Assembly: GCF_006345805.1 (NCBI RefSeq)
Contig: NC_043018.1
Span: forward strand, 22,320,001-22,384,000
From: Octopus sinensis
Lineage: Eukaryota
Direction: 5' to 3'
Length of the DNA stretch: 64,000 bases
In this document: positions 1,053 to 63,300 of the stretch, one piece after another
How the letters are laid out: each line of letters opens with the position of its first letter
Numbering within the stretch: the first letter of the stretch is position 1
Made by a program: the position numbers and the translations under genes
Notes under the pieces: generated by a model
Databases searched by the model: none
The model's input: only the letters and a program-made list of their open reading frames with translations
Told to the model about the DNA's origin: nothing

Positions 1053-1464
1053 CCTTTCCATGAGCACAAGGCCAGCAATTTTAAGGGAGGCCCAAGTCGA
1101 TTATATTCGACCCCAGTATATGACACATTTTATCGATCCCGAAAGTTCCCTTCATCCTCTGTAATATCAAATCAATGCTGTGTTATTCCGCGGTGGATGT
1201 TGAACTCAGAACGTAAAGACGGACGAAATACCTATTTCTTTATTACCCACAAGGGACTAAACACAGAGGGGACAAACAAGGACAGACATAGGTATTAAGT
1301 CGATTACATCGACCCCAGTGCGTAACTGGTACTTAATTTATCGACCCCGAATGGATGAAAGGCAAAGTCGACCTCGGCGGAATTTGAACTCACAACGTAA
1401 CGCAGACGAAATACCGCTAAGCATTTCGCCCGGCGTGCTAACGTTTCTACCAACTCGCCGCTTT
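1053..1464 (-). mobile_element. SINE A composite: head, one young-tail unit, then an older SINE A body with the ancestral tail
   Basis: tRNA-like head at ~1410-1462; junction AAGAAATAGG|TATTTCG at ~1231; flanked by GATAAAGTTA(TA)AATAAT at 1035-1052 and 1465-1480. Confidence 0.85.
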
Positions 1465-4212: not shown

Positions 4213-4613
4213 TGTGTGTGTGTGATGGATAGCAGCGGTGCCACAGCGTATCTACATTGATATGAATTATGAGATGTCAATGAAATTTCAATAATCGGGG
4301 GAGAAAGAATTAACTGTTGACGTTATTGGATGGTAATATTATTGTAGTACATGGCTACACAAATGTAATTTCAATACAAATATTTATAATTATTTGGGAA
4401 GGAAAATTAATTCGAGGAGTGTGCAGAGAATAATTCATTTTGCAACTAAATTAGTGTGTAATGTACTGCGAAGAGAAAACTAATTAAATTGGTTAATTTT
4501 AGAGTAAAAATCTCTCATTTAACTTCACACACACACACACACATACATACATAGAGTGTGTGTGTATGTATGGGTATAGATGATTGGTTTAAAAAGTTTT
4601 GCTTCGCTACCAT

Positions 4614-5031
4614 ATATATTTCTTTACTACCCACAAGCGGCTAAACACAGAAGGGACAAACAAGGACAGACAAACGGATTAAGTCGATTACATCGACCCC
4701 AGAGCGTTACAGGTACTTAATTTATCGACCCCGAAAGGATGAAAGGCAAAGTCGACCTCGGCGGAATTTGAACTCAGAACGTAACGGCAGACAAAATACC
4801 TATTTCTTTACTACCCACAAGGGGCTAAACACAGAGGGGACAAACAAGGACAGACAAACGGATTAAGTCGATTACATCGAACCCAGAGCGTTACAGGTAC
4901 TTAATTTATCGACCCTGAAAGGACGAAAGGCAAAATCGACCTCGGCGGAATTTGAACTCAGAACGTAACGGCAGACGAAATACGGCTATGCATTTCGTCC
5001 GGCATGCTAACGTTTCTGCCAGCTCGCCGCC
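4614..5031 (-). mobile_element. SINE A dimer (head plus two 184-bp units) inserted in an old SINE B
   Basis: Units repeat with period 184 (TATTTCTTT at 4617 and 4801); 16-bp TSD TTTGCTTCGCTACCAT at 4598-4613 and 5032-5047. Confidence 0.9.
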
Positions 5032-5278
5032 TTTGCTTCGCTACCATGGTGCGACACCATGGAGAAGCGTGTTCAGCTATAAGCCTCGGGTTGACCAGAA
5101 TCTGCGTGAAAGCCCATTGCATATGTGTGCGTGCGTGCACAAATTCACATATGTACACACAGTCAGATACAGACACGTACAAGTAGTCATATAGTGTGTG
5201 TGATATAGTCTTGATATGTACTTAGTGTTGTCTGCGTTGAGAAATAGATCGACTTTGGCTGCTGCCTCCTCAAAGGAT

Positions 5279-5386
5279 GTTAACAGCTACGGCGGTACAT
5301 ATTCTAAACTTGGAACGATACAGTGAAGGTTAGCATGCCCTCTACGTAAGGGTGACACGCAAATTCGGAAACGTTCCATATTTTTT
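5279..5386 (+). pseudogene. RNU6: U6 snRNA pseudogene (full length, ACAGAGA box mutated)
   Basis: ACATATTCTAAACTTGGAACGATACAGTGAAGGTTAGCATGCCCTCTACGTAAGGGTGACACGCAAATTCGGAAACGTTCCATATTTTT aligns by eye to metazoan U6 with about 10 substitutions and 1 gap over ~90 nt; ACAGAGA has become ACAGTGA. Confidence 0.88.
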
Positions 5387-5387
5387 A

Positions 5388-5651
5388 TAGGCGCAGGAGT
5401 GGCTGTGTGGTAAGTAGCTTGCTTACCAACTACATGGTTCTGGGTTCAGTCCCACTGCGTGGCACCTTGGGCAAGTGTCTTCTACTATAGCCCCGGGCCG
5501 ACCAAAGCCTTGTGAGTGGATTTGGTAGACGGAAACTGAAAGAAGCTCGTCGTATATATGTGTATGTATATATATGTGTATGTATGTATATATACATATA
5601 TATATATACATATATATATATACATATATATATATACATATATATATATAC

Positions 5652-11876: not shown

Positions 11877-12270
11877 CTAGCAGTATTCCCCGGCGTTGCT
11901 CGGGTTTGTAAGAGAAATAACTATATAAACATTTTTAGAGAGTTATAGCCCAAAAATAGCAAAAAAAATGCATTAAAAATGGAAAAAAATTATGGTAAAT
12001 TTTTTTTAATGGTTGACTCATCGTAGACATTTTTAGAGAGTTACTTCCCATATATAATAGCGAAAAATGCATTAAAATGGAAAAAAATGATGGTAATTTT
12101 TTTTTAACTCGTAGACTCATCGTAGACGCGCGCTAATACCCAGAAGGGCTCGATATGAATCACGACTATAAGATACCCGGTTTTGGTTAAACTGCACCGA
12201 AAAATGTGGGAGTAGTTAGGAATCTAAATCGTAGGAGACAGACACACAACCTCTCTCTTATATATAAAGA
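11877..12270 (-). mobile_element. Non-autonomous Helitron, 394 bp
   Basis: On the minus strand A|TC...CTAG|T, subterminal CCCGAGCAACGCCGGG hairpin, internal ~100-bp repeat; near-identical to 30765-31157 and 39645-40036. Confidence 0.88.
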
Positions 12271-12934: not shown

Positions 12935-14196
12935 CGGGGGGCGTTCAATAAGTAATGCCCCTGACCCACTTTCAGTTGTTTGATCTAGCTGAAATTTTGC
13001 AAATGCAATTATCTATATCTCTATAGATTATGTAACAAATTACAGCTCTGAACTCATTGTGGTTTCTGATTTACAGGTGTTTTAACTGAGTCAAGTGTGA
13101 AATAGAGCCTGTTGAGTGTCGAGCAGTGATCCGGTTTTTGTATTTGAAAGGACGCACACCACGGGAGACTTTTGATAAAATGAAAGTAACTTATGGTGAT
13201 GATGCCCCATCATATGACCTTGTAAAACGCTGGTATCGTGAATTCAAACATGGTCGGAACTCTGTGGAAACAGCTCCCAGATTTGGTCGCCCCCCTTCTG
13301 CCATTGATGAGGCATCTGTCCGTCAAGTTGAGGCTGCCATTCTGGAAGATCGACGCATAACTATTCGCCAAATAGCCCATGAGGTCAAGATTAGTACCAA
13401 GTCTGTGGAAACTATCATTCATGATCATTTGCATATGCAAAACGTGTCTGCCAGATGGATTCCCAGGCTGCTCACACCTTTCCAGAAGCAAGAACGCGTC
13501 GAGTGCTCGATGATGAATTTGGAGATGTGCCAAGAAGCTGAGTCAAAACTTTTCAAAAGACTGATTACACAGGATGAAACCTGAGTCCATCACTATGATC
13601 CAGAGAGCAAAGTCCAGTCAATGCAGTGGAAGCACCGTGACTCACCTCCTCCAAAGAAGGCAAGGGTGCAGCCCTCCGCTGGCAAGGTCATGCTCAGTCT
13701 TCTGGGACCAGGACGGAGTAGTGATGACAGATTTCTTGGCAAAGGGTACCACAATTACAGGAGCCTATTATGCTTCATTTTTGAGGAAATTAAGAGAAGC
13801 TATCAAAATCAAGAGGCGGGGCAAGATCAGCAAAGGCATCCTCCTCCTGCAGGACAACGCTCCGGTCCACAACTCGCGTGTCGCCAGATCAGAAGCACAG
13901 GCGTGCGGCTATGAACTCCTCCCCCTCTGATTTTCACCTCTTCCCATCTATGAAGTTGTTTTTGAAAGGAAAGCGTTTCCCAGATGATGCACCCTTGATT
14001 TCTGAAGTCACGTCGTGGTTGGAGGACCAAGCTGGGGTCTTCTACAAAAACGGTCTCCATAGCTGCATCAAACGATAGGAGAAATGTGTAACTCTGGGTG
14101 GTTCCTATGTAAAAAAAGACTAATAACTGTGCCAAGTTTCGTTACTCTACTGCTATGGGAAGTGGGTCAGAGGCATTACTTATTGAACGCCCCTCG
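12935..14196 (+). mobile_element. Full-length mariner (DD34D) element
   Basis: ~37-bp TIRs CG(G/A)GGGGCGTTCAATAAGTAATGCC(C/T)CTGACCCACTT; TA target duplication at 12933-34 and 14197-98. Confidence 0.95.
13102..14123 (+). pseudogene. Mariner transposase pseudogene
   Basis: HTH region RAVIRFLYLKG..., WIPRLLT, ITQDET*, VFWD, LQDNAPVH, PSDFHLF; ATA in place of ATG, TGA in DETW, frameshift near 13700, YSPDL motif deleted near 13920, TAG near 14077. Confidence 0.93.
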
Positions 14197-16344: not shown

Positions 16345-16945
16345 CTGCTGTGGCCGTGTGGTTAAGCTCGCTTTGCAATCACATAGCTTTGGGTTCAATC
16401 CAACGACGCAGCACCTTGGGCAAGTGTCTACTATATCTCCCCAGGCTGACCAATGCCTTGTGGTGGAAACTGTGTAGAAACCCGTTGGATGTATATATTT
16501 ACACGTGTGTGTTGTGTGTGTGTGTTTGCTCTCCCCTCACACACACTACTACCTATTTCTTTATTACCCACAAGGAGCTAAACATAGAGGGGACAAACAA
16601 GGACAGACATAGGTATTAAGTCGATTATATCGACCCCAGTGCGTAACTGGTACTTAATTTATCGACCTCGAAAGGATGAAAGGCAAAGTCGACCTCGGCG
16701 GAATTTGAACTCACAACGTAACGACAGACGAAATATCGCAAAGCATTTCGCCCGGCGTGCTAACGTTTCTGCCAGCTCTCTGCCGCTTGACAACTAGTGG
16801 TGATTTGTTTACACCTCCGTAACTTAGCTGTTCGGCAAAAGTAACCGATGGAATACGCATCAGACTTCAAACAAAATCGTTCAACTGAACCCTTCAAAGC
16901 GGCACTCGAGCATGGCCTCGATCCAACGACTGAAACAAACGAAAG
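16345..16945 (+). mobile_element. SINE B, old copy split by a nested SINE A
   Basis: Head, core and (GT)n before 16553; GCTTGACAAC..TAACTTAGCTGTTCGGCAAAAG and 3' end after 16786. Confidence 0.8.
16554..16785 (-). mobile_element. SINE A, young-tail monomer nested in SINE B
   Basis: Minus strand ends AAAGAAATA and continues into GGTAGTAG; ACCTATGTC tail subtype. Confidence 0.9.
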
Positions 16946-19719: not shown

Positions 19720-20984
19720 GTTGTTATTATTTACCGTCTGCTCCACCCTCCTGAACTTGCAGACGACTGTTGTGTGAATCTTTTAATATATACACTGTAA
19801 ACAACTTATTTGGAAATCGCAGGAAATTAAATAACTGCAAACGTACTTTTATTTCATTTTATTTCCTAATTTTTTTATTTCAAATTTTGCTTGATATAAT
19901 TTTGGTCAATATACAACTTACAAAATAATGTTAAAAAATTTTTGTTCGTCGTGAATCAAACAGTATTATTGACATGAAATATTTTTTCAAAAAATATCAA
20001 TGCAAAATTGAAAAGCATATTTTCTAACAATTGAGACATTAGCTTTGTAACTGCAGCCTAGATGTAACTACGAAATGAACTTCCTATCACATATACATAT
20101 TTAATTTTCAAACATTTTCCTCGATATAAAATTCTTCCATTTTTTAAAAAAATTCACAATGGAAATTTATAAAAGAAATAAACCGAAATATCTCTTTCAT
20201 CCAACGCCGTTGTCAGATATAGCGTTGTAAATAAGTGAAGCCAGTTCCCCGATAACTAAAATTGGTTCCTTAGTCACTTTTCTAAAACGATACATACGAA
20301 CAAAATTCATATTCAAATGTGTATTGATTATATTTAAACAGAGAAATGTAAAAAGATATTTGTCATGGCGTATACATGCGCACGAATATGTAGTGTATAT
20401 TTGTTGGCAATATCTTTGAAGGTAAATAATGATTTATTTTATTCTCTACAAGTGAAAAGTGCGTAATCGATCCACACGCCGTAATATCTTACTAGTATTT
20501 AATCAATCGATTGCAAAGAGATGAAAAAAGATATATTATGAGAGAAATACCAAGATAGGTCTTCGCAAGATAGGTAAAGCTTGCTAAAATATCCTGATCC
20601 TGAAAGCTAACATTTTACTACAAATAGTAGAGAGCTTCGTTGGAAAAAGTAACTCTTGCTAAATGACATTCAAATCAGTGGTCTGAAGCCGGATAGATCA
20701 CGAGTTTCCAAGAAATGTTTAAGCACACAAATTCCTTCTAGGAATTGTTAAAGGGTGGGGGTCGATAAAAAAATATAGTAGACATATTTAACAATTGGCA
20801 AATTCAGAAATTGAACCCGAGATCACTTTATCCTATGCAGACAAAAGCAACTCAAGACTACGATCGCGATTCGCGAAAATATTACTATCGCCACGAAAAA
20901 AAATCTGACCATTCAAGACAGTGTGGAATCAAATCTAACAGCAGTTTCATCTTTGGTGCGCTTTTTCTGGCCAAGACCGTCGTC

Positions 20985-21578
20985 GCTGGCAGAAACGTTA
21001 GCACGCCAAGCGAAATGCGTAGCCGTATTTCGTCTGCCGTTACGTTCTGAGTTCAAATCCCGCCGAGGTCGACTTTGCCTTTCATCCTTTCGGGGTCGAT
21101 AAATTAAGTACCAGTTACGCATTGGGGGTCGATGTAATGACTTAATACTTATGTCTGTCCTTGTTTGTCCCCTCTGTGTTTAGCCCCTTGTGGGTAGTAA
21201 AGAAATAGGTATTTCGTCTGCCGCTACGTTCTGAGTTCAAATCCCGCCGAGGTCGACTTTGCCTTTCATTCTTTCGGGGTCGATAAATTAAGTACCAGTT
21301 ACGCACTGGGGTCGACGTAATCGTCTTAACCCGTTTGTCTGTCCTTGTTTGTCCCCTCTGTGTTAGCCCCTTGTGGGTAGTAAAGAAATAGGTATTTCGT
21401 CTGCCGCTACGTTCTGAGTTCAAATCCCGCCGAGGTCGACTTTGCCTTTCATTCTTTCGGGGTCGATAAATTAAGTACCAGTTACGCACTGGGGTCGACG
21501 TAATCGTCTTAACCCGTTTGTCTGTCCTTGTTTGTCCCCTCTGTGTTTAGTCCCTTGTGTGTAGTAAAGAAATATATA
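20985..21578 (+). mobile_element. SINE A trimer: one head plus three ~184-bp units
   Basis: Units start (TATTTCG) at 21026, 21210 and 21393; junctions AAAGAAATAGG|TATTTCGTCTG; ends GAAATATATAT. Confidence 0.92.
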
Positions 21579-21899
21579 TTCAGTGCATTTTAGCGACTGT
21601 AAGAAATAACACGCAGACAGTAGACCGGACACAGAACACGACAGTCAGCGGACAGCAGCAGAACCAGTAGAAGCCACAAACAATGGACAGCAGCGACGGC
21701 AGCTAACCTGAAGAAACTCACGATAGCGACTGCTATGATAGTCTAAGAACAATAAGCTTTGAACTATCTCGGTGTTTGTCGTTCGATGTAACTTTTGTTT
21801 TTGTTTACGATAAAAAAAAATTTCTTTATCAAAAATTTTAAAAAGATTTCTAAATTCTTTATCGTAACAAGACAAAAACCACTCAAGGTTTGCAGTCAA

Positions 21900-22510
21900 T
21901 ATATCCAGTTGTTCCCGCCTCTCAGATTTAGGGTCGATAAAATACAGTAACAGTCAACGTAACCGATTTGCCTTCCCCTCAAAATTGCTGGCTCTGTGCC
22001 AAAAACCGTTTACACGTGCCAGGAAGAATGCTTAACGGCTTTCATACGTCTTTAGGTCCTAAGTTCAAATTCCGCCGGGGTCAACTTTGCCTTTCATCCA
22101 TTCGGTATCTATTAAATAAGTACAAGTTGAGCACTGGGGTCGATGTAATCGACTAGTCCCCTCCCCCAAAATTGCATTTCTTGTGACAAAATTAGCGGTA
22201 TTTCGCCCGTCGCTCCCTAAGTTCAAATTCCGCGAAAGTCGACTTTGCCTTTCATCCTTTCAGGATAGATAGATTAAGTACCAGTGAAACACTGGTGTCG
22301 ATGTGGTTATTAAGGGGGCGAACTGGCAGAATCGTTAGCGCACCAGACAAAATGCCTAGCAGCATTTCTTCTGGCTCTTTATATTCTCTGTTCAAATCCC
22401 ACCGAGGTCAACTTTGCGTTTCATCTTTTAGGGTCGATAAAATACAGTAACAGTCAACGTAACTGATTTGCCTTCTCCCTCAAAATTGCTGGCTCTGTAC
22501 CAAAAATTCA
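21900..22510 (+). repeat. Cluster of decayed SINE A fragments with a local ~90-bp duplication
   Basis: Several AGTTCAAATTCC/CTTTCATCC motifs; TAGGGTCGATAAAATACAGTAACAGTCAACGTAAC..AAAATTGCTGGCTCTGT occurs near 21930 and near 22430. Confidence 0.7.
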
Positions 22511-26454: not shown

Positions 26455-26822
26455 TATATATACACATATATACGTATATATACACATATATACGTATATA
26501 TACGTATATATATACGTATATATATACGTATATATATACGTATATACGTATATATATACGTATATACGTATATATATACATATATACGTATATATATACG
26601 TATATATATACGTATATACGTATATATATACGTATATACGTATATATATACATATATACGTATATATATACGTATATACGTATATATATACGTATATATA
26701 TACGTATATATATATACGTATATACGTATATATATACATATATACGTATATATATATACATATATACGTATATATACATATATACGTATATATACATATA
26801 TACGTATATATACATATATATA
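26455..26822. repeat. TACG(TA)n compound micro/minisatellite
   Basis: Repeated TATATACG/TATATATACG units. Confidence 0.92.
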
Positions 26823-27161
26823 TTCGTCTTTTTAACAAAATATAATAGAAATTATTCCGGAAACTTTAGTTCTAATTGATAAAAATGATTAATTTCTTCC
26901 GGAAACCATAATTCTCCCCACCCCTTTTCTTTTAGAGAGAGATTTGTCTTTATTTTTGTGGTTTTTTTTCATCTTAGTTTGAATTTCGTTGCTCACACAG
27001 CTATTGTCATCGCTACATGTTTATATGCGTGCCTCTTTATTTTGTTTTTATTTTACCCTATTTACCGTCAGGAAAATGATACAGTATAATTTTGTTATTC
27101 AGAACAGACACACGAAACCGGATAATTGTTTACACGATGCAGTTTTTACTGGAAACAGCAA

Positions 27162-27510
27162 AAAATAAAATAAAATAAAATAAAATAAAATGAAATAAAA
27201 TAAAATGAAATAAAATAAAATAAAATAAAATAAAATGAAATAAAATAAAATAAAATAAAATAAAATAAAATAAAATAAAATAAAATAAAATGAAATAAAA
27301 TAAAATAAAATAAAATAAAATGAAATAAAATAAAATGAATAAAATAAAATAAAATAAAATAAAATGAAAATAAAATAAAATAAAATAAAATGAAATAAAA
27401 TAAAATAAAATAAAATAAAATAAAATAAAATAAAATAAAATAAAATGAAATAAAATAAAATGAAATAAAATAAAATAAAATAAAATAAAATAAAATGAAA
27501 TAAAATAAAT
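27162..27510. repeat. (AAAAT)n pentanucleotide array with GAAAT variants
   Basis: Seen directly. Confidence 0.95.
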
Positions 27511-30764: not shown

Positions 30765-31157
30765 TCTTTATATATAAAAGAGAAGTTGTGTGTCTCCTAC
30801 GATTTAGATTCCTAACTACTCCCACATTTTGCGGTGCAGTTTAACCAAAAGCGAGTATCTTATAGTCGTGATTCATACCAAGCCCTTCTGGGTATTAGCG
30901 CGCGTCTACAATGAGTCTACGATTTAAAAAATAATTTACCATTATTTTTTCCATTTTAATGCATTTTTTCGCTATTATATAAGGGAAGTAACTCTCTAAA
31001 AATGTCTACGATGAGTCAACGATTAAAAAAAAAATTTACCATCATTTTTTTCCCATTTTTAATGCATTTTTTTGCTATTTTTTGGCTATAACTCTCTAAA
31101 AATGCTTATATAGTTATTTCCCTTACAAATCCGAGCAACGCCGGGCGATACTGCTAG
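30765..31157 (+). mobile_element. Non-autonomous Helitron, 393 bp
   Basis: A|TCTTTATATATAAAAG ... CCGAGCAACGCCGGGCGATACTGCTAG|T. Confidence 0.88.
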
Positions 31158-35762: not shown

Positions 35763-36331
35763 AATCGGAATCTCCATTTTGTGTTGTTTTAGCGAGAGAC
35801 AGGCTCCCAGTACGATGTGGCACCCTAGGGGTACCAATTTCATAGTAACAGAGAAAACTTACAAATCGTTGTCTTAAGCGAAAAGAATGTATTTCATTAT
35901 AACTTATTGCTGATTCTCGAAGTGGGTGGTCATAGCTGGGTACCTTCTTTTGCCGGGGGATGAGCGAACCTGCTAAGATATTTTAATGGGTCTACTTGCT
36001 AGAATTAGTATTTTAAAAACAATTGAGAATGGCATTTCAATAATAGGGGATTGTACGGTCCCCTGAATAGAGGTATTTCGCAATTATGCTGGGAAGATGG
36101 TAAATAGATCGTGTTGGAATTGAATAGTATAGCTACTCAGTGGTTTTATGTAACATCTTGAATTTCTACAAGGCTCGAGTGAAACCCGAAACCTCTAAAA
36201 CGTAGCTCAATAATTTATGGGGACACTAAGTCGGCGAGTTGACAGCCGGGCAAAATGTGCAGTAATATTTCGTTCGTCATCACCGGGGCGAATTCCCCTT
36301 TAATCCTATCAGAGTCAACGAAATAAGTACC

Positions 36332-36565
36332 TATTTCTTTACTACCCACAAGGGGCTAAACACAGAGGGGACAAACAAGGACAGACAAACGGATTAAGTC
36401 GATTACATCCACCCCAGTGCGTAACTGGTACTTAATTTATCGACCCCGAAAGGATGAAAGGCAAAGTCGACCTCGGCGGAATTTGAACTCAGAACGTAAC
36501 GGCAGACGAAATACCGCTAAGCATTTCGCCCAGCGCGCTAACGTTTCTGCCAGCTCGCCGCTTTT
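36332..36565 (-). mobile_element. SINE A, young-tail monomer nested in the core of an old SINE A
   Basis: 15-bp TSD AACGAAATAAGTACC at 36317-36331 and 36566-36580. Confidence 0.93.
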
Positions 36566-36928
36566 AACGAAATAAGTACCAGTTGATCATTGGGGGCGCG
36601 GGGGGGGACGACGACGATGCAATCAAGTTATCCCTACTCCACCGAAATTGCTGGCCTTGCATCAAATTTTGGAATCAACTTATGGGAACACTGCTTGACG
36701 TCTTCGACTTGGAGGAGATACAATTAATTGCTTCTCAATCTTCATTCGTGCAGCGCAACACAATGAACAGGAAAATATTGTCAAGTCGATTTCTGGACAC
36801 AAGGAGCGCATCTGCCAGATGCTGTGTCACTCGAAGTATCACAGTGTAATAGCTTTCCTGCTAAGATTTATATACATAGGGCAGTGTTTCTCAACCGTTT
36901 TCATCCAATTTACTCTTTCACTATATAC

Positions 36929-37347
36929 AAGGCGGCGAGCTGGCAGAAACGTTAGAACACCGGGCGAAATGCTTAGCGGTATTTCGTCTGCCGCTACGTT
37001 CCGAGTTCAAATTCCGCCGAGGTCGACTTTGCCTTTCATCCTTTCAGGGTCGATAAATTAAGTACCAGTTACGCACTGGGGTCGATGTAATCGACTTAAT
37101 ACCTATGACTGTCCTTGTTTGTCCCCTCTGTGTTTTACCCTTGTGGGTAATAAAGAAATAGGTATTTCATTTGTCGTTACATTCTGAGTTCAAATTCCGC
37201 CGAGGTCGACCTTTGCCTTTCATCCTTTTGGGGTCGATAAATAAAGTACCAGTTTCGCACTAGGGTCGATTTAATCGACTTAATCCGTTTGTCTGTCCTT
37301 GTTTGACCCCTCTATATTTAGCCCCTTGTGGACAATAAAGAAATATA
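36929..37347 (+). mobile_element. SINE A dimer carrying two different tail subtypes
   Basis: Units start at 36980 and 37163; unit 1 tail TAATACCTATGAC, unit 2 tail TAATCCGTTTGTC. Confidence 0.9.
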
Positions 37348-38749: not shown

Positions 38750-39330
38750 GAAAGCGTGGGTGTGTGGATAGAAGTTTACTTCCGAAGCATATAGTTCCAG
38801 GTTCAATTCTACCGCGTGGCACCATGGGAAAGTGTCTTCTATTATAGCTTCTGGTCAACTAATGCCTTTTGATTGGATTTGATTGAGAAAACTGAAAGGA
38901 GCTCATCGAGTATATATAAATGTGTGTGCGTGACCCACCACCGCTTGAAACCGGTCTTGGTGTGTTTACGTCTAGTTATCTAGCGATTCGGCAAAAAAAA
39001 AATAACGATAAAATATGTACGCGGCTTTACTGAGGTCGATTCGTTCGACTAGAGCTAGCAGAAACGTTAGCACGCCGGACGAAATGCGTAGCCGTATTTC
39101 GTCTGCCGCTACATTCAGGGTTCAAATTCCGCCGAGGTCGACTTTGCCTTTCATCATTTCGAGGTCGATAAATTAAATACCAGTTACGCACTGGGGTCGA
39201 TGTAATCGACTTAATTCGTTTATTGTCTGTCCTTGTCTGTCCCCTCTATGTTTAGCCCCTTGTGGGTAATAAAGAAACATAATATACTTCAAGACGGCGC
39301 TCCAGCATGGCCGCAGTCAAAGAACTGAAA
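38750..39330 (+). mobile_element. SINE B, old copy split by a nested SINE A
   Basis: Core GGCACCATGGGAAAGTGTC; 3' end CTTCAAGACGGCGCTCCAGCATGGCCGCAGTC resumes at ~39290. Confidence 0.75.
39053..39277 (+). mobile_element. SINE A, young-tail monomer
   Basis: AGCTAGCAGAAACGTTAGCACG through GGGTAATAAAGAAA. Confidence 0.88.
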
Positions 39331-49807: not shown

Positions 49808-50003
49808 TTTGCGAGGTGATATGCTACAAAGAAACAAAATATTAATCCACAAATGAGAGTGATGCAGCATAGACGAATCTATAACAGTCCCGTTTCAATG
49901 CCATCGCGGCTTTTAAACAATCATAAACTACAATAGAGAACAGAATTTGTGAATAATGCCCAGTACTGCAACTGTCATCTTGAGGTAAGTGTTTGACACG
50001 ACG

Positions 50004-50226
50004 AGCTGGTAGAAATGTTAGCACGCCAGGCGAAATGCGTAGCCATATTTCGTCTGACGTTACGTTCTGAGTTCAAATTCCGCCGAGGTCGACTTTACCT
50101 TTCATCCTTTCGGGGTCGATAAATTAAGTGCCAGTTACACACTGGGGTCGATGTAATCGACTTAATACCTATGTCTGTCCTTGTTTGTCCCCTCTATGTT
50201 TAGCCCCTTGTGGGTAGTAAAGAAAT
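50004..50226 (+). mobile_element. SINE A, young-tail monomer
   Basis: 21-bp TSD AGGTAA(G/A)TGTTTGACACGACG at 49983-50003 and 50227-50247. Confidence 0.93.
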
Positions 50227-50646
50227 AGGTAAATGTTTGACACGACGTCGACAACATAACCATCAAAATTGAAAATGGCGTCGATAGAGAGAAACAAACA
50301 ATGGCCGTGTCACAATTTAGATAAACACAGAAGCAAATGCCTTGGTGTTTCTGCAAGAACGAATGTATGCAAGGCGTGCAGGTACACGCATGCAAACACC
50401 CACGCACGCCTGCACGTTCATGAACGATTAACATAGCAGAATGCATACACTTTCACGCTTACTATACCAGAATGCATATATTAATATTATTTAAATATTT
50501 ACACAGATACACATTCGCAACCATACAATTTGCTGGGTTATCTTTCCAGCTACATTTCTAAACTATTAAATATATATATATATTCTGAAATGTTTAACTA
50601 CATAAAAACAGATAGCTTTACATTTTACACGCACTCGCACATACAA

Positions 50647-50949: not shown

Positions 50950-51505
50950 ACATACATACATATATATATATATACATATACACATACTTATATACATATA
51001 TACATTTATACATATACACATATACACATACTTATATACATATATACATACATACATATACTTATATACATATACATATATACATATACACATACTTATA
51101 TACATATACACATACTTATATACTTATATACATATACACATACTTATATACATATACACATACTTATATACATATACACATACTTATATACATATACACA
51201 TACTTATATACATATACACATACTTATATACATATACACATACTTATATACATATACACATACTTATATACATATACACATACTTATATACATATACACA
51301 TACTTATATACATATACACATACTTATATACATACACACATACTTATATACATATACACATACTTATATACATATACACATACTTATATACATACACACA
51401 TACTTATATACATATATACATACTTATATACATACACACATACTTATATACATATACATATATACATATACACATACTTATATACATATACATATACATA
51501 TATAA
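50950..51505. repeat. 20-bp minisatellite (CATATACACATACTTATATA)n
   Basis: Seen directly; most homogeneous at ~51130-51410. Confidence 0.93.
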
Positions 51506-52484: not shown

Positions 52485-53065
52485 GTGTATACATAATACA
52501 AATATATATACTCACATATATGCATGAATACATACATAATACAAATATATATACTCACATATATGCATGAATACATACATAATACAAATATATATATACT
52601 CACATATATGCATGAATACATACATACATATATATATACTCACATATATGCATGAATACATACATACATATATATATACTCACATATATGCATGAATACA
52701 TACATACATATATATATACTCACATATATGCATGAATACATACATACATACATATATATATACTCACATATATGCATGAATACATACATACATACATATA
52801 TATATACTCACATATATGCATGAATACATACATACATACATATATATATACTCACATATATGCATGAATACATACATACATACATATATATATACTCACA
52901 TATATGCATGAATACATACATACATACATATATATATATACTCACATATATGCATGAATACATACATACATACATATATATATACTCACATATATGCATG
53001 AATACATACATACATACATATATATATACTCACATATATGCATGAATACATATATATATATATAT
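52485..53065. repeat. 40-46-bp minisatellite CTCACATATATGCATGAA(TACA)n(TA)n, 13 copies
   Basis: CTCACATAT counted 13 times between 52511 and 53029. Confidence 0.92.
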
Positions 53066-53199
53066 ACATATATTTGTTCCAATATATACACTCCTGCATA
53101 CTTATACATATGTATACATATAAACATACCTACACAAACATTTGTATATTTATCAAAAAATTCTTGCCGCGTCTCAAGATGGATGACAAACAAATGCTT

Positions 53200-55858: not shown

Positions 55859-55944
<86 letters not shown>
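55858..55944. repeat. (ATT)n microsatellite preceded by (GGT)n
   Basis: Seen directly. Confidence 0.95.
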
Positions 55945-55946
<2 letters not shown>

Positions 55947-56690
55947 AGGCGGTGAGCTGGCAGAATTGTTAGCACGCCGGGCGAAATGCGTAGCCGTATT
56001 TCGTCTGTCTTTACGTTCTGAGTTCAAATTCCGCCGAGGTCGACTTTGCTTTTCATCCTTTGGATTAAATAAGTACCAGTTACGCATTGGGGTCGATATA
56101 ATCGACTTACTCCGGTTGTCTGCCCTTGTTTGTCCTCTCTGTGTTTAGCCCCTTGTGGGTAGTAAAGAAATTGCTATTTTGTCTGCTGTTACGTTCTGAG
56201 TTCAAATTCCGCCGAGGTCGACTTTGCCTTTCATCCTTTCAGGGTCGATAAATTAAGTACCAGTTGCGCACTGGGGTCGATATAATCGAACTGATCCCTT
56301 TGTCCTTGTTTGTCCCCTCTGTGTTTGGCCCCTTGTGGGTAATAAAGAAATAGGTATTTGGTCTGTACGTTCTGAGTTCAAATTCCGCTGAGGTCGACTT
56401 TGCCTTTCATCCTTTCGGGGTCGATTAAATAAGTACCAGTTACGCACTGAGGTCGACGTAATTGGCTTAATCCCTTTGTCTGTCCTTGTTTGTCCTCTTG
56501 TGGGTAGTAAAGAAATAGCTATTTTGTCTGCTGTTACGTTCTGGGTTCAAATTCCGCCGAGGTCGACTTTACCTTTCATCCTTTCGAGGTCGATAAATTA
56601 AGTACCAGTTGCGCACTGGGGTCAATCTAATCGACTGGTCCCCTACCCCAAAATTTCGGGCCTTGTGTCTAGCATAGAAAAGATTATTAT
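55945..56690 (+). mobile_element. SINE A tetramer: head, three young-tail units, one ancestral-tail unit
   Basis: Units start at 55997, 56175, 56355 and 56520; the last ends in the ancestral tail GGCCTTGTGTCTAGCATAGAAAAG(ATT)n. Confidence 0.9.
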
Positions 56691-57560
56691 TAAAGGCAAC
56701 GAGCTTAAAGAATCGTTAGTACACCGGGCGAAATGATTAACAGTATTTCGTCTGTCTTTACGTTCTGAGTTCAAATTCCTCCGAGGTCGACTTTGCCTTT
56801 CATTCTTTCTGTGTCAATAAATTAAGTACCAGTGAAACACTGGGGTCGATGTTATCGACCAGTCCCCTCCCTCAAATATCAGTCCTTATGCCTTTAGTAG
56901 GAAGGAGGAGGAGGAGTAGGATCATCATCATCACCATCACCATCATCATCATCATGAGGAATCCTTAGTGCGCTCGGTGGAATTTGTCTCTTTACGTTCT
57001 GAGTTCAAATCTCGCCAGTCACCTTTGCCTTTCTTCCTTTCGGGGGTTGATAAAATAATGCATCAGTGAAGTACTGGAAGCTGATGTAATCGACTTGTCC
57101 CCACCCCACCACCCTGAAATTTCTGGCCTTGCGTCAAAACCTGAAACTATTGTCAGCTGATAGAATCGAGAGTGTGCCGGATCAAATGCTTAGCAGCTTT
57201 CCTTCCAATTCTTAGCGTTCTGAGTTCATATGCAACCGAAACCAACTTTACCTTTCGCCGTAGTTGATCACGGGGTAACATGTTTTCCACTTGTCTCAGT
57301 CCTCTAAACTTGCTCACCTTTAGTCATAATTTGAAAGCATTATTATTATGAGAGCGATAGAACAGGCAATTTCTTTAGCGCGCCAAACAAAATGCTTACT
57401 TACATTTCTCCGACTCTTTACATTGCGAGTTCAAATGCCGCCGAGGTCAAATTTGCCCTTTCGCCCCTTCAGAACCGATGCATTAAAGTACCAGTTGAAC
57501 ACTGAGGTCGGTGCAATCAACTTCCTTTCTCTAAAACTGTTGCCACCCTTGTGCCTATTG
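56691..57560 (+). repeat. Run of about four more same-strand SINE A copies, progressively decayed
   Basis: TTCTGAGTTCAAAT-like motifs near 56765, 56997, 57218 and 57427. Confidence 0.75.
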
Positions 57561-58179
57561 GACAAATAATTATTATTTCAAGTGAATATGAATAAAATCT
57601 AGTCTCACACATGACTGTTTCTAAAACGTTTTAGCATATTGCCAGCATTAGGTTTTCATCTATCACCATTATTATTATTATTATTATTATATTATTATTA
57701 TAATAAGCACAGAGAAACTACTCCGTCGTATAATCCATTTATTCCTAGCAACAACCACAGCATCTCTCTCGTGTTTGCGATAGAATATCTAATGAAATAT
57801 GAAGCTATTAACTTTGAAAAGTTCCATTCCTTAAGGATCAAACAATCCCCGGTTAATTCGCTTCTTTAGAACTTCACACCCCATTTAACTTTGATAGTTG
57901 GGAAAAGCAAGCTCAAGGCGCTTCAATGTCGGATTTAGACCGTGCAGACGACCAGTTAATCAACACCACAATTTACAATCCCGAATCGAACGACAGCAAA
58001 GTCAAGATCGAACGCCTTACATTATACGAGAAATACAATTTATTGAAAAATATTTTCCTACAATACCCAATAGAAATTAAAAAAACAAAGCTCTACTTTC
58101 TAGAGATTCTGTTCAATTTCTCTATTATTTATTAAGAATGCAATTGTCTGGTGGTGGCGGTGGTGGTAGTAGTAGTAGT

Positions 58180-62369: not shown

Positions 62370-63300
62370 AAGGGTTTAGCCAAACAAATGGAGACCAGTG
62401 CTTATTGCTTTTGAAGTCTGGTACGTGTTCTATCCATATCTTCTGTCGAATCGTAAGTTACGGAGATGTAAACAAACCAACACCGGCCATGAAGTGATGG
62501 TGACACCCACACACACACACACACACAAGCTGGTTATCGGTGCAACACTGCACCCTATACATATATATTGCCAGCAACTAGCTATTTTGCTTGCAGTAAA
62601 TCAGTGACCGATGGTCGCTTTGTTTATAATATATTGCTGGCTGGAGCGGACTCTGGCCATCTCTCTGGCGACCAAGTGTTCGTGACTGAGGATGAGGAAA
62701 CTAGCTCGAAACCGAATCGGTCTCGCGATCCTTTTGTCTGCTGGAAGATGGTATTGGTTTGCTTTCCTGCTGGCAATATTTACGTACAGGATGCAGTGAT
62801 GCGCTACGCCGGGCGAAATGCGCAGCCGTATTTCGTCTGCCGTTACGTTCTGAGTTCAAATTCCGCCGAGGTCGACTTTGCCTTTCATCCTTTCGGGGTC
62901 GATAAATTAAGTACCAGTTACGCACTGGGACCGATGTAATCGACTTAATCCGTTTGTCTGTCCTTGTTTGTACCCTCGATGTTTAGCCCCTTGTGGGTAG
63001 TAAAGAAACAGATAATGAACTGACAGATCTGCCTGGGGTTAAACTAGTAGTAACATGGAACAGCCACATTGTTGTAGAGATTAGCTTTACTTGTTAGTAT
63101 ACTTACTTCTCGCATCTCATTGAGACTTTACAACTAGCTATTCTGAGTGTGTGTGTGTGTGTGTGTGCATCCGGCGACCTTTCACGCATAGTTACTATCT
63201 ATTTCATCCACACACGCAAGGTACCATGCAGTCGGACTGAACCCAAAACTAAGTGGTAAAAAAGCGAGTTCCTTAACCGCACAGCCATGTCTGCGCATGC
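62370..63300 (-). mobile_element. Old SINE B containing nested MITE pieces and a SINE A
   Basis: 3' module at ~62370-62505, (CA)n, MITE-related sequence ~62528-63060, (GT)n, then B head ~63200-63295. Confidence 0.55.
62806..63008 (+). mobile_element. SINE A, young-tail monomer, 5'-truncated
   Basis: ACGCCGGGCGAAATGCGCAGCCGTATTTCG through GGGTAGTAAAGAAA. Confidence 0.88.

Follow-up and report, generated by a model that had tools for sequence, protein, structure and literature searches.

The window analysed here, a stretch of 64,000 nt from Octopus sinensis (NC_043018.1), contains at its positions 20985–21574 a tandem array, denoted A3, of a short interspersed element (SINE) to which we refer as SINE A. 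The element is laid out as a 50-nt left part of the head followed by a unit that holds a B-box-like motif, GAGTTCAAATTCC, ~25 nt from its start, a conserved central domain (...GACTTTGCCTTTCATCCTTTCGGGGTCGATAAATTAAGTACCAG...) and a 65-nt tail. In array A3, one head is followed by three such units, joined tail to unit, as listed below.

20985–21023, plus strand: head of A3; SINE A positions ~11–50, with ~10 nt missing at the 5′ end; A-box-like part, 5′ strand and loop of a hairpin
21024–21207, plus strand: unit 1 of A3, 184 nt; 3′ strand of the hairpin, B-box-like GAGTTCAAATCCC, central domain
21208–21390, plus strand: unit 2 of A3, 183 nt, head-less; begins GGTATTTCG straight after the tail of unit 1; tail subtype TAACCCGTTTGTC
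21391–21574, plus strand: unit 3 of A3, 184 nt, head-less; tail subtype TAACCCGTTTGTC; followed by TATATTCAG, with a run of four T (T4) 14 nt downstream

The tail of unit 1 is of the TAATACTTATGTC subtype and terminates in AAAGAAATA, and the mixture of tail subtypes noted in the original prediction for this array is thereby verified.

Arrays and monomers of SINE A

The SINE A loci in the window were gathered by BLAST with the first copy as the query, and the array loci were read base by base. Ten loci were recovered, 82–94% identical to the query, comprising five arrays and five monomers. Tandem Repeats Finder (TRF) reported 183–184-bp tandem arrays at 4617–4983, 21025–21574, 36978–37345 and 55997–56642. 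The original prediction had described five loci at which one head precedes two to four head-less units, and the base-by-base reading, TRF and BLAST all confirmed this description. Besides A3, the arrays in the window are the following.

1053–1464, minus strand: array A1; 2 units; copies of its target-site duplication (TSD) at 1465–1480 and 1035–1052
4614–5031, minus strand: array A2; head and 2 units; TSD ATGGTAGCGAAGCAAA at 4598–4613 and 5032–5047
36929–37345, plus strand: array A4; head, unit of subtype TAATACCTATG, more diverged unit of subtype TAATCCGTTTG, then (TA)n
55945–56682, plus strand: array A5; head, three SINE A units, fourth head-less unit with a C-type tail (..GCATAGAAAAG ATT)

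Array A1 opens with a young head and a young SINE A unit; past the junction come 33 nt of the next unit, young as well, and then an old, diverged unit with a C/D-type tail. Array A5 sits within an (ATT)n tract, and its junctions read, in order, GCTA, GGTA and GCTA. Two generalizations about the units held in part: a unit length of mostly ~184 bp describes A3 (183–184 nt) and fails for the shorter units of A5 (165–180 bp), and the units are mostly SINE A, with the exception of the second unit of A1 and the fourth of A5, which carry the tail of another family.

Further octopus DNA was obtained via protein-based look-ups, amounting to ~91 kb of O. sinensis (loci L006–L008) and ~120 kb of non-N O. 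bimaculoides sequence (L001, L003, L010 and L011), and about 280 kb of octopus DNA was examined in all. A mariner remnant in the window, used as a query, led to three O. sinensis loci, two more O. bimaculoides loci and one non-octopus contig; protein queries derived from an open reading frame (ORF) through array A3 and from a six-frame SINE composite returned O. bimaculoides proteins only. Two exact-pattern scans of metagenome contigs for SINE A gave zero matches in the first and two chance AT-rich matches in the second. The further sequence searches yielded just one extra array and a handful of monomers and led to no locus orthologous to the window; SINE A tails were rarer outside the window, being found at three loci in O. 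sinensis, two in O. bimaculoides and one on a 543-bp metagenome contig. The O. bimaculoides copies of SINE A are monomers, the tails of which run on into AATA... or poly-A. The extra array is from O. sinensis (L008:3714–4115) and consists of a SINE A head and unit, the junction GAAATA/GGTATT, and a head-less unit with a C-type tail, with one TSD. The number of units per locus ranges from one to four, four being the maximum in the octopus DNA examined.

A single junction point joins all units

At 8/8 junctions in the window, the last base of the tail, ...AAAGAAATA (once AAAGAAATT, i.e. ...AAATT), is joined to element position 51, which precedes the B-box-like motif by ~25 nt; the right side of the junction reads GGTATTT at six of these sites and GCTATTT at two. 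Counting the junction in L008, the position is identical at 9/9 sites. The head is absent from every internal unit: each unit spans position 51 to the final base of the tail, and all units end with the full tail, ...AAAGAAAT(A/T). The earlier claims of one junction point and of a head that is never duplicated are thus sustained throughout the window. The sequence GAAATAGGTA occurs nine times in the window, in which the frequency of GGTA is 0.0024 per position; recurrence of the junction by chance is excluded.

The junctions also differ from the free ends and from the heads of the family. Tail extensions (TATAT, AATA, poly-A and others) are present at 0/9 junctions as compared to 10/13 free 3′ ends (Fisher p = 0.0004), and G occupies position 51 at 9/9 junctions versus 5/13 heads (p = 0.004). 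The statistics given here and below take related units as independent, and their significance is hence somewhat overstated. The identity of position 51 in the head (C versus G) was also entertained as an argument excluding homing, and was dropped: heteroduplex resolution could yield either base.

Two sites bear on the detail of such joints. At L008:3942–3968, the junction reads GAAATA GGTATT GTATTTGTC, with GTATT doubled in place of TCGTC; the doubling could be a footprint of out-of-register priming or the result of later slippage. Just downstream of A3, a cluster of four B/D-type SINE pieces occupies 21960–22510, and in it, at ~22194, a 5′-truncated unit begins AGCGGTATTTCG (in the hairpin loop) directly after an ATT tail. 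This is the sole tail-to-head-internal junction seen outside SINE A.

The junction coincides with the edge of a hairpin loop

Positions 36–66 of SINE A are predicted to fold into a 13-bp hairpin with a 4-nt loop, UAGC, akin to an anticodon arm (−16 to −17 kcal/mol, z about −3). The pairing is maintained at 89% across 40 heads belonging to several families and drawn from three genome sources, and the closing pair covaries (U-G 21, G-C 7, U-A 5, C-G 2). Position 51 is the first base past the loop of this hairpin, and the head-less units open with the 3′ partner of the closing pair. The junction of the tail with GGTATTTCG is itself palindromic (GAAATA-GG-TATTTC) and is predicted to fold as a weaker mimic of the hairpin (−7.3 kcal/mol).

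The description of the head as tRNA-like was not borne out by dedicated tools. ARAGORN reported 0 tRNA genes for the SINE A head and Rfam returned no tRNA match to it even at E ≤ 10; the label derives from the box motifs only, with the B-box-like GAGTTCAAATTCC kept in 69 cores and the A-box region (GAGCTGGCAGAA) resembling the consensus weakly, as judged by eye. Across 20900–21650, Rfam detected no family except for a chance-level match to an unrelated phage hairpin (E = 6.3), and no self-cleaving ribozyme was found at the gathering threshold across the window. No T4 run is present in the consensus units or at the junction, and A3 is wholly devoid of T4, the first run being the one 14 nt downstream; RNA polymerase III could therefore read through a multimer, and through A3 as a whole. 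As for the central domain, its assignment as a MIR-type CORE (octopus OR1) was withdrawn, the CORE motif being located in a different SINE at 5392–5545. The central domain may instead resemble Nin-DC/Deu.

GGTA is common to junctions and target sites

The five monomers of SINE A in the window are as follows.

16554–16787, minus strand: monomer M1; GGTAGTAG directly after the tail
36332–36565, minus strand: monomer M2; TSD GGTACTTATTTCGTT at 36317–36331 and 36566–36580
39044–39277, plus strand: monomer M3; tail variant AAAGAAACA; GGTA absent
50004–50227, plus strand: monomer M4; ~10 nt missing at the 5′ end; TSD GGTAA(G/A)TGTTTGACACGACG at 49984–50003 and 50228–50247
62806–63011, plus strand: monomer M5; 5′-truncated at ~position 19; tail variant AAAGAAACA; GGTA absent

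The motif GGTA stands directly after three of the five monomers (M1, M2 and M4; p = 1.4e-7), and in M2 and M4 it makes up the first four bases of the TSD, right after ...GAAATA. The TSDs of other SINE families open with A/T-rich bases, never with GGTA. TSDs of 15–20 bp flank M2, M4, A2, A1 and the O. sinensis monomer in L006, and three arrays are enclosed by one outer TSD each, with 16/16 bases matching in A2, 16 nt with one 2-nt indel in A1, and 13 nt with 1 mismatch in L008. In A2, the perfect 16-bp TSD comes after GAAATA+TAT, and GGTA lies 2 nt inside it. TATAT closes the arrays A2–A4, and GGTA the monomers M1, M2 and M4; in A2, A3, A4, A5 and L008, the flank begins with bases other than GGTA.

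Because the tail is followed by GGTA in the same manner at the junctions and at the monomers with a GGTA target, the joint between units resembles that formed at the 3′ end in an ordinary insertion. Its left side is therefore the point at which reverse transcription starts on the RNA, and its right side is the motif that heads the TSDs of the family. The original prediction had tied the junction to GGTA as a priming or target site, and the monomers M1, M2 and M4 speak for that tie.

The target of M2 is the antisense conserved core (AAGTACCAG) of an older, decayed SINE (36317–36331 and 36566–36600); the GGTAC of the M2 TSD is the reverse complement of this core.

Units within arrays are as diverged as dispersed copies

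Units 2 and 3 of A3 differ by 1.1% only, as compared to 5.5% between units 1 and 2 and 6.6% between units 1 and 3; the pair is the only clear recent duplication. The distances within the other arrays are 4.3% in A2, 10.7–13.8% in A5 and 12.6% in A4. Averaged over units, the distance is 8.2% within arrays and 8.8% between loci (permutation p = 0.27), which argues against local duplication as the main source of the arrays; the unit diversity within arrays likewise argues that they are not rolling-circle copies of one RNA. Three private changes common to the A2 units lie within 9 nt, and this cluster looks like a short conversion tract. Subtype composition and order differ in all six arrays.

Three arrays combine families. 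In A1, A5 and L008, the last unit belongs to another SINE family (C/D-type tail) with the SINE A units positioned 5′ of it, and the outer TSD opens with ATT-like bases, the kind typical of the C/D families. The addition of SINE A units onto a resident SINE, as originally predicted, entails just this layout. Unit 2 of A5 is a mosaic of a C-type core and an A tail, and the 3′ unit of A4 is apparently the older one (7 versus 15 private changes, p = 0.07).

Array A1 preserves a seam between young and old sequence. Its TSD is ATTATTTA(TA)ACTTTATC. The 33 nt past the junction hold one mismatch, and from the B box onward the unit is ~20–26% diverged and bears two 12-nt insertions (1/33 versus about 21/100 changes, Fisher p = 0.01). 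An already multimeric template must have given rise to the A1 junction by copying, with homology at the B box serving to join it to an older SINE.

A model for array formation and its alternatives

We propose that the arrays arise at the reverse-transcription step of retrotransposition, and not by duplication of DNA; we place the probability of this reading at roughly 0.45. Many SINE A RNAs would carry GGUA(UUUCG...) right 3′ of ...AAAGAAAUA, originating either from multimers or from copies flanked by GGTA. As four bases would not suffice, the RNAs would carry GGUAUUUCG... after the tail and pair over a longer stretch. Synthesis of complementary DNA (cDNA) would begin where the 3′ end of a DNA strand pairs with these extra RNA bases: priming in unique DNA would furnish a monomer with a TSD that starts with GGTA, and, the same bases being present at SINE positions 51–59, a DNA end at that site would prime another round on a SINE A RNA. 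Homing would draw the priming end from a nick in a resident SINE, whichever family with this head it belongs to; template switching would draw it from a growing cDNA that has just copied the 3′ strand of the hairpin. The hairpin may assist in freeing the cDNA end after copying of that strand. The 5′ end would close on the head by homology, so that whole units are added and the head is never duplicated, and finished arrays could be transcribed and copied in turn.

Between the two sources of the priming end, we lean slightly toward addition onto resident copies over template switching within one event, because of the mixed arrays, the type of their TSDs and their older 3′ units. That arrays are also copied as multimers is shown by the young TSD of A1 together with the capacity for read-through. 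More tentatively, transcripts with SINE-body bases past the tail may use SINE heads, resident or in nascent cDNA, as primers; in this way an RNA-mediated process would target the element itself and add whole units at a site set by the hairpin, which would be the seed stage of a satellite.

Several observations weigh against the reverse-transcription reading. The family sample is small, with six arrays, nine junctions and four clear TSDs, and the TSD of the L006 monomer opens with TGTA in place of GGTA. The GGTA present inside the tail (GGGTA[A/G]TAAAG) is used at 0/9 junctions, from which it follows that 4-nt pairing alone is insufficient to fix the site, and the 3′ crossover in A1 lies at the B box rather than at GGTA; of the predicted priming at a 4-nt GGTA, the link to the site is retained and the sufficiency of those four bases is not. 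The near-perfect TSD of A1 is explained by retro-copying of a composite source no less well than by grafting in situ. A partner long interspersed element (LINE) would be one that shares the tail ...GTAGTAAAGAAATA, and neither a tail-only match nor a reverse-transcriptase ORF was present in the window or in the octopus loci. Lastly, DNA-break repair templated by another SINE copy could yield the same products.

Arrays could alternatively be retro-copies of multimeric source genes, in which the junction originated on one or a few occasions, for instance by insertion of SINE A at the GGTA of another SINE's head combined with read-through; the GGTA-followed monomers would then reflect internal priming at the first junction, and recombination would alter the number of units. 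Such sources would account for a junction that is invariant and free of extra bases, for the one TSD around each of A1, A2 and L008, for units devoid of T4 up to the terminator 14 nt past A3, for the TATAT ends of A2–A4 alongside the GGTA ends of M1, M2 and M4, and for A1, in which the junction and 33 nt stem from a multimeric template and a young-looking TSD encloses an old last unit. They sit poorly with a subtype composition and order that is different in each of the six arrays, with distances within arrays as large as those between loci, and with the three different non-A units that close three arrays, for which many independent masters would be needed. We consider multimeric sources possible but unlikely, and the one multimeric master raised as an alternative in the original prediction fits badly with arrays that each differ in composition. 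Processes at the level of DNA, namely unequal crossing-over, replication slippage or break repair from another SINE locus, could also have made or spread the arrays, and they are the mechanism favoured in the literature for SINE arrays of clams and squamates (PMC11481361, PMC10702118). The 1.1% distance between units 2 and 3 of A3, the conversion-tract-like 9-nt cluster of three shared private changes in A2, and the mosaic units of A5, unit 2 with its C-type core and A tail among them, are of the kind that these processes leave behind. As the origin of the arrays, however, they are improbable: at 9/9 junctions, the left breakpoint falls precisely where the retroposon ends 3′, a terminus that only RNA or cDNA possesses; GGTA is missing from the start of the flanks of A2–A5 and L008, which hence offer no repeat to seed a duplication; and units within arrays are no more alike than unrelated copies (p = 0.27). 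DNA-level processes probably act secondarily, as in units 2 and 3 of A3.

A further set of models starts from an RNA end: the RNA would be cut in the anticodon-like loop, and its 3′ half circularised for rolling-circle copying, ligated to another SINE RNA, or copied to its 5′ end with an end-to-end template jump to follow. The position of the junction exactly at the boundary of hairpin loop and stem, and the fold of the palindromic junction GAAATA-GG-TATTTC at −7.3 kcal/mol, are what suggest such models. Against them, if random RNAs were cleaved, about half of the junctions should show C at position 51, and 0/9 was observed (p = 0.004); the junctions never scatter within the 4-nt loop; every array has a head; and Rfam detects neither a self-cleaving ribozyme nor another family in the array. 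Rolling-circle reverse transcription, also offered as an alternative in the original prediction, fits badly in particular, as it predicts identical units, and mixed subtypes and tail families with differences of 1–14% within arrays are seen instead. These models are accordingly judged very improbable. Least credible of all is that the arrays are independent insertions of 5′-truncated copies into earlier tails, or an artefact of assembly. SINEs of other families do stack head to tail in ATT tails within the window (55860–57580 and 21960–22510), and the 5′-truncated unit that starts AGCGGTATTTCG after an ATT tail (22194) is a precedent for such an insertion; nonetheless, the nine SINE A junctions are identical to the base, no TSD lies between units, and no tail microsatellite is found at the junctions. 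An artefact is disfavoured by the point changes that distinguish the units and by an independent O. sinensis assembly with the same structure. The one real case looks different: at L001:40784–40798 (O. bimaculoides CM046612.1), ten N lie inside a SINE A copy with the same 55 nt of SINE sequence on both sides, and the apparent tandem repeat at this site is an artefact of the assembly.

Two narrower schemes were tried and rejected. Growth at the 3′ end via the tail-internal GGTA, with 5′ truncation by microhomology, predicts 15-bp tail duplications, which are absent, and the flanks of A2–A5 and L008 lack a starting GGTA. Deletion between the GAAAT of a tail and the GAAAT of the following head predicts GAAAT/GCTTAGC, which was not seen.

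Neighbouring repeats

At 5280–5545, a diverged copy of the U6 small nuclear RNA (Rfam RF00026, 74 bits, full length) ends in TTTTTT and is followed by ATA, a full-length SINE of another family (5392–5545) that holds the MIR-like CORE motif CACCTTGGGCAAGTG, and (TATATG)n. No TSD was found around this U6-SINE pair; in its layout it matches a U6-SINE chimeric retrocopy, a structure characteristic of template switching. The region 55860–57580 comprises (ATT)28, array A5 and four SINEs of other families, placed head to tail and each starting in the ATT/ATC-type tail of the previous one; it is a pile-up of tail-targeted insertions. In O. bimaculoides, L010:2003–2430 holds a dimer of a D-family SINE that belongs to the other known type of SINE multimer, with the structure TSD1-SINE-partial TSD1-SINE-TSD1, the second copy of which keeps most of its head.

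The mariner remnant lies at 13126–13930; it encodes a Mos1/mariner transposase with HTH_48 and Transposase_1 domains and is frameshifted. A DNA copy of it, 88% identical, is present on an ENA eukaryotic contig without octopus SINEs (L009:9842–10900), which suggests horizontal transfer of this mariner. Two-copy arrays with periods of 98 and 100 bp are located at 11929–12127 and 30904–31104, and as their consensus units are reverse complements of each other, they represent one repeat family in both orientations. Simple repeats at 27162–27509, 52489–53072, 26455–26823 and 50969–51504 include (AAAAT)70, an array with a 44-bp period (×13.5, 95% identity), and two arrays of TA/CA-rich units with a ~20-bp period.

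Relation to known SINE arrays and significance

In the literature searched, we found no published description of these arrays in octopus. SINE-derived tandem arrays as such are already known, and the octopus arrays are a variant of them; what is new is that every unit keeps its complete tail, that a hairpin defines the site, and that junctions and TSDs have GGTA in common. The closest likeness is to the blood clam Scapharca broughtonii, in which tRNA-derived SINEs form multimers of the type TSD1-(SINE)n-TSD1, for which unequal homologous recombination was proposed (PMC11481361). The clam multimers share with the octopus arrays the one TSD pair, a complete head in the first element only, later units head-truncated at one position, and the inclusion of other SINE families. 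They differ in that their first and internal units are tail-truncated, with only the final tail complete, whereas octopus tails are complete in every unit; nor do the authors report a link to a target motif (PMC11481361). The sSat satellites of squamates are likewise SINE-derived, with tandem units of partial SINEs, a longer terminal unit that reaches the SINE terminus, and independent origins in several families (PMC10702118). These satellites extend to about 1000 homogenised units, the borders of which bear no fixed relation to the retroposon 3′ end (PMC10702118); the octopus arrays, in contrast, have 2–4 units that are as diverged as dispersed copies.

In the Gobi jerboa, Dip/B1 multimers, as they are cited in PMC10702118, also join SINE sequences head to tail and can be propagated, and consist of full-length SINEs, heads included. 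An Alu-like fixed dimer is the same in all copies, unlike the octopus arrays, which vary in number and composition. Template switching by non-LTR reverse transcriptases, as in U6/LINE-1 chimeric retrocopies and tripartite chimeras in Magnaporthe, resembles the octopus case in that the 3′ terminus of a DNA strand serves as primer on the 3′ end of a second RNA and one TSD pair results; those chimeras join different RNAs at variable points, whereas the octopus product is a repeat of the same family joined at one fixed point. For the R2 element, priming is guided by 3′ flanking rRNA sequence: synthesis starts where the target DNA base-pairs with the RNA sequence that lies 3′ of the element. In RTE-related SINEs, the first bases of the TSD correlate with the SINE 3′ end, implying that pairing of primer and template selects the site (PMC6007223); that correlation concerns single bases and microsatellite tails, as opposed to the 4-nt octopus motif, which also occurs in the element's own head.

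How a dispersed repeat is converted to a tandem one is an old open question, and the published arrays of a clam and of squamates have been ascribed to unequal recombination without direct evidence. In SINE A, the unit border combines the 3′ end of the retroposon RNA with the 4-nt motif that heads the TSDs of single copies, and thereby points to reverse transcription. If the proposed reading is true, it adds a self-priming or homing mode to SINE biology and explains the multimers at about half of the loci of this family. Each added unit would bring a B-box-like motif, so that arrays could multiply binding sites of the TFIIIC type. The route from SINE to satellite put forward in the original prediction is speculation at present; if true, it would be a route of positive feedback from dispersed to tandem repeat.

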